A stretch of DNA of 64,000 nucleotides from Salpingoeca rosetta (taxonomy: Eukaryota; Protista; Choanoflagellata). Location of the stretch: NCBI GenBank assembly GCA_033442325.1, contig JAWQFM010000008.1:434001-498000 (forward strand). The letters run 5' to 3'. Shown piece by piece: positions 51,263 through 54,900 of this stretch; position 1 is the stretch's first letter; each line of letters opens with the position of its first letter. The notes beneath the pieces were generated by a model, which saw only the letters and a list, made by a program, of their open reading frames with translations, did no database searches and had not been told where the DNA came from. The position numbers were made by a program, and so were the translations under genes.

Positions 51263-51605
51263 TCACAGCAGGTCTGGGTTTGGCTCGCCACAGCGGCAGA
51301 AGCGCTTGTACGAGAACACCTTGTCGCCGCAGAACCCGCACTGCCAATCGCCGTCGCGCGTGTGCTCTTCAGATGCGCGTGCGTGTCCGCAAAGACACTT
51401 TGTCGCATACACAAAGTTGAGGCGACCACACGTGGGGCAGTCCCAGTCCCCGGCAGCGCGACGCTCCATCACCTCATCCGCCGTGGAGAACGGCAGGTTG
51501 CGCGGGTGTGTGGGCGATGATGCTGTGGTGGTGGTCGTCGTTGTTGCACTTGCGTGGCAGCGGTGGGCGGACGTGTGCAGGCGCCGTGTCGACTGCTGCA
51601 GCGGG
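51263..51605 (-). CDS. Exon encoding two variant RanBP2-type zinc fingers; either the terminal exon of the AidB gene or a separate small gene
   Basis: GDWDCPTCGRLNFVYATKCLCG and DGDWQCGFCGDKVFSYKRFCRCG; acceptor TTGCAG immediately upstream. Confidence 0.75.
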
Positions 51606-51920
51606 CTGCAATGACGGTGGGCGGTTGGTGGTTGGTGAGTGGTGGCGGTTGATATTGATATGACAGGCTGTAGTAGATGCACACACACTCACACACACAC
51701 ACACAACCACACACACACACACACACAACCACACAACCACACACACACGCACACACATCTCTCTCTCTCTCTCTCTCTCTCTCTCTCTCTCTCTCTCTCT
51801 CTCTCTCTCTCTCTCTCTCTCTCTCTCTCTCTCTCTCTCTCTCTCTGTGGCTGATAATAGCAGTGAACAAGCCCCCTCCCCCAACATTCACACTCGTTCC
51901 AGCATTCTCCAGGCCATCAC

Positions 51921-54900
51921 TCACTTCCAGGCGTGCGTTGTGCTGGCAGCCTCTGGCTTGACGATGGTGTTGCTGCGGGTGATGATTGCATCGACGTCAC
52001 ACCCCGGCTCCAGCGCACCGTATTCAAGGCGCGTTGGCGATCCAGACAGCCGCTGAGGAGGGAGAGGGCGGAGGACGCGTGGCGAGAGGTGTGAGTGTGA
52101 GTGTAGGTGAGTGAGTGGGTGTAGGTGCGTGTGTGTGTGCATGTGTGTGTGAGTGAGAGTGAGAGAGGTAGGCACACGAAACAGGTGTGCAAAGACGTGG
52201 TGCACGGCAGTCGACGCACTGTCTTGAGGAAAGCATCCACAACAGCTTCCGTGCTGGTGCGCGACAGAGCGACGGCCTGCAGCGACAAAAACGACAAAAA
52301 ATGAGATGTTTGAGTTCATTTCATACACGCACACGCACACGCACGCACACACACACGTACACACATACACGGGCAAAAAGGCGCACCTGCAGCAGAAGAG
52401 CGGCGGTGCCGACAATGTTACGGAGACGGCCCTGGTTCTGCCCAATGTTCTCAATCTCAGCCTTGAGCTGCACACATACGCATGAGTGAATGGATGCACG
52501 CACATGGGTCACGTGTGTCATGTCATGCATGTGAGAAGTTGTGTGTGTGTGTGTGTGTGTAAGAGTGTGAGAGTGTGAGTGTGTGTGTGTGTGTGTGTGT
52601 GTGTGGTGAGGTATGGGTGAATCACGATGCGTGGAGGTTTGTAATGTGTGCCGTCATTACCTTGTTGAACTTGCGGCCGTATTCTTCGACGTGACCGAGC
52701 GATGAGAGCTCGTGCATCAGCGCCTCAACAGCGCTGGACAGGACAGCAAAGACACAGGCAGCAGCAGCAGCACATAAGACGGTGAGCGTGCTTGGTACGG
52801 TGTCATTGTGACATACGAGAGCTTCTATGGGCGTACACATGTGACGTGGGTGTAGCATGGGTGTTGATGTGTGTGTGTGTGTACACGCACAATTTTCAAC
52901 ACACGCACACGCACGCACACGCGCGCACACATGCACAACAGCCGCACGCAAGCAAATACGTATGCGTACTCTGGCTCGCGGTGGAAGCATCGAAGAACAT
53001 CGAGACAAATGACGTTTCCGGATCCTTCCCAAATGGCATTGAGCGGGGCCTGGCGGTACAGGCGGCCCATCGGGCCCTCGTCCACATACCCTAAACGCGG
53101 CCAGCAGGAAGCAAAGGCGGTGGGAGGGGCATATCACGTGAGGACGCATGTGCATGTGTATGCGTATGTGTATGTGCGTGTGCATGTGTTGGTTGTGTGC
53201 TTGTGTTGGTTGTAGTGTGGTGTCTATGCAAGACAACAACCACATGCGAGGAGGAGGAAGAAGAAACCGGGCGCAAGTTACGCTAACCGTTTCCGCCAAG
53301 ACTCTCCATGGCCTCATACACAAACTGGGGCGCGCGCTTGCAGATGTGGTACTTTGCAATGGCGGTGGCAATGCGACCAAGCGCCTGTACAGCGACGTGA
53401 TGCGACACGGAGAGGCAGTGGTGTGTGGATGCACGTGTTGGGAGGGGAGGGGGATTAGATGCGGGCGTTCGCGCCGTGTGTATACGTGTGGATGTGCGGG
53501 CATTTGTGTCTGCATGTGTACGGGTACATGAGCATGTGTTCACGGCGGCCGCTGTACCTTGTCGTATTCGGAGGCCTGCGCGTCAAACGTGGACGCGATG
53601 CGGAACGCAAGTGCAGTTGCGGCCTCGCTCTCAATCGTCTGTCGGGTGTGTGCGTGAGAGAGTGTGTGTAGGGGGGAGTGTGCGTGTGTGTGTGCGAGTG
53701 TGTGAGTGTGTGTGTGGGTGTGTGAGTGAGTGTGGGTGCGTGTGTGAGGGTGTGTTTGCGTGTGTGCATGTGAGTGAGCATGTCGTGCGAGACAGCACAG
53801 GTGGTGACAACAATGGCAAGCCATGGCACAGGCAGCAGCGATTCACAGCGGAAGGAGGGGGACGCACGAGATCGGCAACGACGGCGCGCATGAGTGGCGT
53901 GTCGAGCAGAACAGATCCAAACGCAGACCGGTGGCTGTCAACACACACACACACGCACACGCACACACACACGCACGCATATGCACACGCACGCACATGC
54001 AAAGACGCACATGTTCACGAACACACAAACACACATAGTTTTTGGCCACGCACACATGACAAGGAGGTCAGCATTCAGGGGTCGCACAATAAAGCGTGAA
54101 GAGCAACGACAATAGTCAACACGCACGCGAAGCATGTAAATGAACACACATGCAAACACACGAGAGAACATACGCGTGTGCATGCACATGCGAGCGGAGG
54201 AGCAACAACGACATGAGGGGGGACCTGGTGTGGTTGACGGCCTCAAAGAGAGCGCGCTTCATGAGACCAGCAGTGCCGACGAGGCAGTCCAGCCTGAATA
54301 CACACGCACATACACATTCACACACACAGGATATGCACGCGCGTCCACGCAAAACACACAACGCGGTGTGGTCAGTGCGATGTGCACGTGCTTCCAAATC
54401 AGCACTGTGCAAGCAACCACACTTCAGCCCACCCAACACGGCAATGATGACCGCATTGTGACAACAGCGGTGCGCCCACCTTGTGTTCTGCACCATTTCG
54501 AGGATGATTGCAATGCCGCGGCCCTCGGGCCCAAGCAGCTCTGCGTATGCGTTGTGGTACTCGACCTCGCTCGATGCATTCGACCGGTCTCCAACTTTGC
54601 TCTGGTGTTGACGTGTTTGGTTTGTGGATTGGTGAGCCCGGTTGGGTTTGTGGCAGCGAGAACGTGGAATAAAGAAGCGAGGTTTGGAGAGACGAAACAC
54701 CCCCAATGTGTGCGAGGGTCGCACGCGTGTGCGTTGCACATATGTCTGACCTTGAGGCGCTGGAATCGCAGTCCTTCGTTTCGTTCGCCGGTTGAGGGAA
54801 CCCAACGCGGTACAATGAAGCATGACAGCCCGTTCTCCGTCTACACACACACACACACATATACACACACACAGGTACGTGCGCACCCGATATGGGCTTG

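Follow-up and report, generated by a model that had tools for sequence, protein, structure and literature searches.

An AidB-like gene of the choanoflagellate Salpingoeca rosetta is spliced in frame to an exon encoding two zinc fingers

The flavoprotein AidB of Escherichia coli is a tetramer that carries flavin adenine dinucleotide, has a very weak isovaleryl-coenzyme A (CoA) dehydrogenase activity and binds DNA via a positively charged C-terminal domain; it combines the flavin site of the acyl-CoA dehydrogenase (ACAD) fold with DNA binding, and its biochemical role is unclear even in E. coli (PMC3546729). Other enzymes of this fold, ACAD10 and ACAD11, carry a fused accessory module, in their case a kinase domain at the N-terminus, which acts on the substrate (PMC11342911). 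In yeast, Arg5,6 and Atp25 are composite mitochondrial precursors, each with two unrelated modules around a presequence-like segment, that undergo an internal cut by the processing peptidase of mitochondria (MPP) (PMC8734313, PMC5063612). Here we describe a gene on the minus strand of a 64,000-nt stretch of Salpingoeca rosetta DNA (contig JAWQFM010000008.1, positions 434,001 to 498,000; hereafter the window, whose own positions are used throughout), in which an AidB-like coding region is joined by splicing to an exon that encodes two zinc fingers. The gene fusion is real, is expressed and is conserved in a second species, and it is neither a regulatory switch nor a pair of genes. Our full interpretation, to which we would give a probability of about 0.85, is that one gene produces one mRNA, from which intron 17 is constitutively removed, and that this mRNA encodes a 706-aa fusion of an AidB-like protein with captured fingers.

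Like E. coli AidB, the gene encodes the AidB N-terminal domain (PF18158) above the Pfam cut-off and gives sub-threshold signals for the ACAD middle and C-terminal domains, but it is eukaryotic, is divided into 18 exons, begins with a presequence-like N-terminus and has two added zinc fingers. It resembles ACAD10 and ACAD11 in that an ACAD-fold enzyme has gained a fused accessory domain; here, however, the extra module is a C-terminal pair of zinc ribbons, for which no catalytic role is expected. The likeness to Arg5,6 and Atp25 lies in the joining of two unrelated modules in one precursor around a presequence-like segment, and here the finger module stands alone in a relative. Whereas cleavage has been shown for the yeast proteins, the likeness here is one of sequence, and a flavoenzyme is paired with a small zinc-finger protein rather than with another enzyme of the same pathway.

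On the minus strand the exon junction reads ...CAC GCC TGG AA|GTGAGTGATGGCC..., with the donor G at 51924. The donor GTGAGT contains an in-frame TGA (51923-51921), the acceptor ...cattgcag|C lies at 51606|51605, and an ATG at 51917-51915 is followed by GCC TGG AGA ATG CTG GAA CGA GT|GTGAAT, in which a second GT stands at 51891. The original prediction had singled out the TGG AA|GTGAGT context, the TGA, the acceptor and the ATG, and all are exactly where it placed them. The parts concerned are as follows.

Positions 51925-52052, minus strand: exon 17, the last AidB exon, ending ...CAC GCC TGG AA (W592 plus 2 nt)
Positions 51606-51924, minus strand: intron 17 of 319 nt in phase 2, with donor GTGAGT and acceptor TTGCAG; within it lie the TGA and, at 51915-51917, the ATG that opens a 9-codon open reading frame (ORF)

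Exon 18 (51605-51263) is open in the phase AA+C and carries two Cys4 fingers.

RNA from two stranded raw-read runs (X21 and X22) and two older contig sets (X5 and X11) was aligned to positions 50500-53700 of the window; simple repeats were skipped in the read alignment, and joints were reported from a threshold of 3%. A joint 51605<->51925 (GT..AG, minus strand, 319 nt removed) was found in 126 reads with 50 start positions in X21, in 47 reads in X22 and in one contig each of X5 and X11, so that the proposed in-frame splice (AA+C) from donor 51924 to the zinc-finger exon is now confirmed by both reads and contigs. All seven AidB junctions within the aligned stretch were observed, and first mates lay on the plus strand, as expected for minus-strand RNA in a standard stranded library. 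In X21 and X22 the bin 51784-51890, which includes 34 nt of unique intron sequence (51857-51890), had zero depth, against about 130x over the adjoining exon in X21. All intron bins were at zero depth, the remaining introns being as clean as intron 17, and no contig retaining intron 17 was found in X5 or X11. A joint from 51892 to 51605, as would be used by a mini-exon led by the ATG, was absent at the 3% level, and no other joint at acceptor 51605 was found in the aligned RNA. Thirteen further RNA-like runs from five studies contained 0.36-0.40 of the sampled words of 51000-53700, where the estimated expectation is 0.376 for fully spliced exons 11-18 and about 0.16 without exon 18. Because of the joint reads, the empty intron and these word shares, we conclude that both the TGA and the ATG lie within the intron and that the AidB mRNA includes the finger exon in every data set examined. 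Removal of intron 17 is constitutive in these libraries, and plain AidB is not made there.

The stop codon within the donor is indeed present, as had been pointed out, but there is nothing special about it. Wherever a GTRAGT donor belongs to a phase-2 intron, the frame runs xx|G TRA GT, which contains an in-frame stop; because phase-2 donors of this type always give one, and because the corresponding junction of the second species likewise has a TAA, we regard the stop as a generic by-product. The lesson for annotation is that an in-frame stop within the GTRAGT donor of a phase-2 intron is no evidence for regulation.

The coding region (51263..56915, minus strand) comprises 18 exons and 17 GT-AG introns, with a coding sequence of 2121 nt that specifies 706 amino acids and a stop.

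Positions 56915-56817, 56603-56442, 56278-56184, 55962-55771, 55476-55368 and 55160-55026, minus strand: exons 1 to 6, predicted from frame, GT-AG sites and homology
Positions 54840-54751, 54601-54480, 54293-54225 and 53934-53868, minus strand: exons 7 to 10, predicted in the same way
Positions 53638-53558, 53384-53288, 53090-52970 and 52733-52661, minus strand: exons 11 to 14, from RNA joints and contigs
Positions 52467-52387, 52276-52220, 52052-51925 and 51605-51263, minus strand: exons 15 to 18, from RNA joints and contigs
Position 56915 and positions 51263-51265, minus strand: start ATG and true stop TGA of the fused ORF, from frame and translation
Positions 50999-51262, minus strand: 3' untranslated region of about 260 nt; RNA coverage declines between about 51035 and 50999, with a molecule end at 50999

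The predicted exons 1-10 total 1140 nt, which together with a 26-nt leader gives 1166 nt, equal to the portion of the X11 contig upstream of exon 11.

The same junction occurs in a second genome. The best single-stretch match, P0008, with 58% identity, was called as a prokaryote-style ORF on a Logan contig of 3.8 kb (L002) from run SRR14727191. L002 has a GC content of 37% and contains exons 7-17 of AidB, unchanged in order and boundaries and 45-90% identical, with the finger exon after them. The junction there is TCC TGG AT|GTAAGT ... tttcctag|G CCT CTT CAT, with the in-frame TAA in the donor, and the intron matches intron 17 of S. rosetta in position (2 nt past the Trp codon), in phase (2) and in the continuous frame. 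A third species shows the finger module by itself: P0092, from the transcriptome of Salpingoeca infusionum, is a complete ORF of 161 amino acids (nt 270-755 of transcript comp15078_c1_seq1) with its own Met. This protein has an R-rich N-terminus without an acidic residue in the first 30. L-H-T-S comes next, then a variable region rich in S/T/A, E-E-V and a pair of C-x-C fingers, and the alignment with exon 18 of S. rosetta starts at residue 7. Checking relatives for fusion or adjacency, as had been suggested, therefore gave one species fused at the same junction and one with a stand-alone gene. Because the S. infusionum orthologue stands alone with its own N-terminus, capture of a once separate gene is suggested: on this comparison, a separate presequence-bearing twin-finger gene lying just downstream was most likely captured by the AidB gene via a new splice. 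Intron 17 of L002 (2611-2755) is free of stops in the finger frame, which only 240 of 20000 shuffles equal, and 9 codons ahead of the acceptor it has an in-frame ATG that would give an R/T-rich, presequence-like N-terminus; this ATG may be the remnant of a stand-alone start, or a start that is still usable.

Searches for further examples returned little. A word-index protein search with the finger exon gave no match among proteins of 62-198 aa (and is uninformative for other lengths), and the S. infusionum orthologue, searched likewise, retrieved nothing but itself, so that the stand-alone form stays at one species. Among the best 150 representatives there was no match of about 700 aa with one or two C-terminal fingers, so that no further AidB-finger fusion is visible there; a 688-aa match (P0039) was considered as a fusion and rejected, as it is a protein kinase with fingers. 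A scan of Joint Genome Institute (JGI) metagenomes with the three-species alignment gave 51 loci, which were generic multi-finger proteins at no more than 39% identity, none with AidB exons nearby. We found no literature connecting AidB with zinc fingers or with choanoflagellates.

For the enzyme part, Pfam searches were done exon by exon. PF18158 scored 41.3, 54.3 and 60.1 bits on exons 2, 3 and 4 (cut-off 22.9).

Positions 55771-56603, minus strand: AidB N-terminal domain (PF18158), exons 2 to 4, above the Pfam cut-off

The ACAD middle domain (PF02770) on exon 6 reached 21.6 bits (cut-off 33.3) and the ACAD C-terminal domain (PF00441) on exon 13 reached 21.0 bits (cut-off 22.4), both domains being split across short exons; such sub-threshold scores are to be expected because the exons hold domain fragments. 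By these profile matches, residues 1-592 are predicted to be an AidB-like flavoprotein of the ACAD fold. In a six-frame scan of the 55.4-Mb genome these three exons were the only PF18158 matches, and no second AidB_N gene was found.

The finger exon encodes a linker and two fingers.

Positions 51452-51605, minus strand: linker, residues 593-644, including a poly-Thr run and, at 51569-51580, the conserved L-H-T-S
Positions 51386-51451, minus strand: zinc finger 1, residues 645-666, G-D-W-x-C-x2-C-x3-N-x6-C-x-C-G
Positions 51287-51352, minus strand: zinc finger 2, residues 678-699, G-D-W-x-C-x2-C-x3-V-x6-C-x-C-G

The RanBP2-type signature is W-x-C-x(2,4)-C-x3-N-x6-C-x2-C. Neither finger matches it fully, since the last pair is one residue short in both and finger 2 has V for N. 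On PF00641 the scores were 22.8, 23.0 and 23.6 bits, below the gathering cut-off of 27 and covering only profile positions 2-22 of 30, which we attribute to the last Cys pair being C-x-C instead of C-x2-C. Homology and predicted fold are clearer. A HMMER search against 1.8 billion representatives gave 841 matches at E<=1e-3, down to 4e-46, mostly RanBP2-type finger arrays at about 45% identity, and among these matches P0075, P0006, P0009 and P0016 reach 94-133 bits on PF00641. When 31 finger pairs were aligned, both Trp were invariant together with seven Cys out of eight, the remaining Cys being nearly so, and the C-x-C pair appeared as a one-residue deletion common to a few protist proteins. 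An AlphaFold model of the fingers has a mean predicted local distance difference test score of 86. In Foldseek, the fingers of Nup153, RanBP2, ZRANB2, FUS and RBM5 superpose with a root-mean-square deviation of 0.7-1.0 A over 26-29 residues and a probability of 0.96-1.0, with E-values that do not reach significance for a domain of such short length. The best sequence matches in the PDB are Nup153, RanBP2, FUS and ZNF265, and the ESM Atlas gave weak leads of the RanBP2 type, at 0.79, and nothing stronger. A genome search with the finger pair finds only itself, so that there is no second copy in the host genome.

The fingers thus share the core G-D-W-x-C-x2-C-x3-N-x6-C with the RanBP2-type fingers of Nup153, RanBP2, ZRANB2, FUS and RBM5, and differ from them in the C-x-C last pair, in the V of finger 2 at the signature N and in a Pfam score below the cut-off. 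By homology and predicted fold they are divergent RanBP2-type zinc ribbons; the earlier label of tandem RanBP2 fingers is right as to family, but the C-x-C pair in both fingers and the scores of about 23 bits against 27 set them apart from the standard type. Two protist proteins among the HMMER matches, P0147 and P0136, have three C-x-C RanBP2-like fingers and what by eye resembles a C-terminal RING domain, and judged from these sequences the C-x-C variant is a recurrent subtype beyond this gene.

Two segments of the protein resemble mitochondrial presequences.

Positions 56817-56915, minus strand: exon 1, 33-aa presequence-like N-terminus, by composition (5 R/K, 1 D/E, 7 S/T)

The second is the start of the linker. 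The linker as a whole has about 50 residues, is acid-poor and is rich in S/T/R/H, and its first 30 residues hold no acidic residue, 14 S/T, 3 R and 3 H. The presequence-like look of the zinc-finger ORF near its start, noticed in the original prediction, is seen in this composition at the beginning of exon 18, which is also homologous to the N-terminal region of the S. infusionum orthologue. R..L-H-T-(S/T) is invariant in all three species, and between the two fused species the linker seems at least as conserved as AidB exons 15-17 (45-58% identity).

From what was observed directly (the splice and how dominant it is, the reading frame, which domains are present, the same junction in another species, the stand-alone orthologue in a third and the single-copy state of both modules), the following picture can be drawn. 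Both the TGA (51921-51923) and the ATG (51917) leave with intron 17 and are never in the mature mRNA. The product would have four parts: a mitochondrial-type presequence, an AidB-like enzyme (residues 1-592), the linker and two RanBP2-type Cys4 ribbons. The old presequence of the captured twin-finger gene would persist as the linker, while the N-terminal presequence would direct import, so that the AidB-finger protein is probably mitochondrial. As a stable fusion, the AidB-like enzyme (a tetramer in E. coli) would gain two fingers per subunit as a handle for nucleic acid or for a partner. The C-terminal domain of E. coli AidB is positively charged (PMC3546729), whereas the matching exons 14-17 here have 12 K/R and 13 D/E, a net charge of about -1 by a crude count made without structure or alignment to E. 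coli AidB; because of this difference, the fingers could provide the nucleic-acid contact.

Several points weigh against this interpretation. The splice data come from two raw-read libraries and two contig sets of unspecified culture conditions, and conditional retention of intron 17 keeps a small probability. Exons 1-10 are outside the RNA-mapped positions 50500-53700. Mitochondrial targeting is predicted from composition. By eye, the fingers have neither the Arg residues that mark the GGU-binding ZRANB2 subtype, nor the L-V of the Ran-binding or the T-F of the ubiquitin-binding NZF fingers; their ligand is not readable from the sequence, and they may bind nucleic acid, an activity that is putative. 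Finally, in both raw-read runs the depth over exons 17 and 18 (51925-52052 and 51263-51605) is 2-4x that of the AidB body, and in X21 the upstream junctions have 12-26 reads and the last one 126. This excess could be due to 3' bias, to the loss of reads crossing two junctions (in exons of 57-97 nt) or to an extra short transcript. We favour a technical cause because no cluster of molecule starts was reported and exon 17 contains no in-frame Met.

Other explanations of the locus differ mainly in what they make of intron 17. The original prediction was that its retention would expose the TGA and yield plain AidB; this might happen under some conditions, for example alkylation stress or a particular life stage. 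Retention would indeed end translation one codon past exon 17, and the genome has no other AidB gene to supply a finger-less form. Such a stop-or-splice switch is nevertheless improbable, given that the unique intron sequence 51857-51890 is without reads in two libraries beside an exon at about 130x, that no contig retains the intron, that the other introns of the gene are equally clean and that the donor stop is generic for phase-2 GTRAGT donors and recurs as TAA in L002. The 2-4-fold read excess could also be taken as an additional short, finger-only transcript that starts in intron 16, exon 17 or intron 17 and is translated from a Met at exon 18 residue 46 in S. rosetta, or from the intronic ATG in the L002 species, where the stop-free intron 17 and its ATG would suit such a start. 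We consider this hardly likely, as no molecule-start cluster was reported near 51925-52220, the finger frame of intron 17 in S. rosetta has a stop 28 codons before the acceptor with no ATG after it, exon 17 lacks an in-frame Met, and technical explanations of the excess are simpler. The prediction had also offered a two-cistron layout, with a second ORF from the ATG at 51917, 3 nt past the AidB stop, spliced from GT|GTGAAT to 51605. The ORF and the GT at 51891 are present and phase-compatible, and L-H-T-S would fall 17 residues from the Met, compared with 22 in S. infusionum. This layout is very improbable indeed, for the ATG lies inside a removed intron, the joint from 51892 to 51605 is unseen at the 3% level against 126 reads for the main joint, and L002 has no ATG-led mini-exon at the matching place.

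An explanation of a different kind accepts the single mRNA and departs from the stable fusion at the protein level only, namely that the protein is a composite mitochondrial precursor in which MPP cuts within the linker, at the relic presequence, to release the AidB-like enzyme in its plain form and a separate twin-finger protein. Internal cleavage is possible because the first 30 residues of the linker lack acidic residues and R..L-H-T-S is kept across three species; the alignment of the linker with the N-terminal region of the S. infusionum protein and its conservation relative to exons 15-17 point the same way, and MPP cleavage at presequence-like sites inside fusion proteins is documented (PMC8734313, PMC5063612). 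The comparison draws on three sequences, however, and S/T-rich linkers are common, and we regard this outcome as unlikely while giving it some weight. If true, one mRNA would provide the AidB-like flavoenzyme and a small putative nucleic-acid binder in stoichiometric amounts in the matrix, and the poorly understood AidB family would be tied functionally to an organellar nucleic-acid binder.

In this gene a eukaryotic lineage has independently added a nucleic-acid-type finger pair to its sole AidB-like gene, and the junction is maintained in a second genome of very different composition. These facts lend circumstantial support to the view that enzymes of the AidB type work beside nucleic acid, here probably in mitochondria. 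Gene fusion by splice capture can also be seen cleanly and datably at this locus, since fused and stand-alone states occur in related choanoflagellates, and its product may be a case of internal presequence processing. The species, S. rosetta, is genetically tractable.

Some further features of the region were noted. More than half of intron 17 consists of two abutting microsatellites (minus strand), a perfect (GA)44 at 51758-51846 and an imperfect (CA)39 tract at 51680-51757, and similar CA/GT tracts occupy most introns of the gene. The GT/CA-rich intron segments 52854-52960, 53148-53190 and 53603-53700 draw reads on both strands, loose ends and joints called on the opposite strand, with G>A differences at 52915 and 52923 and a summed contig depth of up to 4217. 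Editing or antisense RNA was considered for these segments and rejected; we read them as dispersed, simple-repeat-like sequence that is transcribed elsewhere in the genome. On the plus strand, a convergent gene (50500-51034) has its stop at 50537-50539 and RNA to about 50930-50940, some 60-100 nt from the 3' end of the AidB-finger mRNA (about 50999), and one X11 contig of 5292 nt joins the two convergent transcripts.

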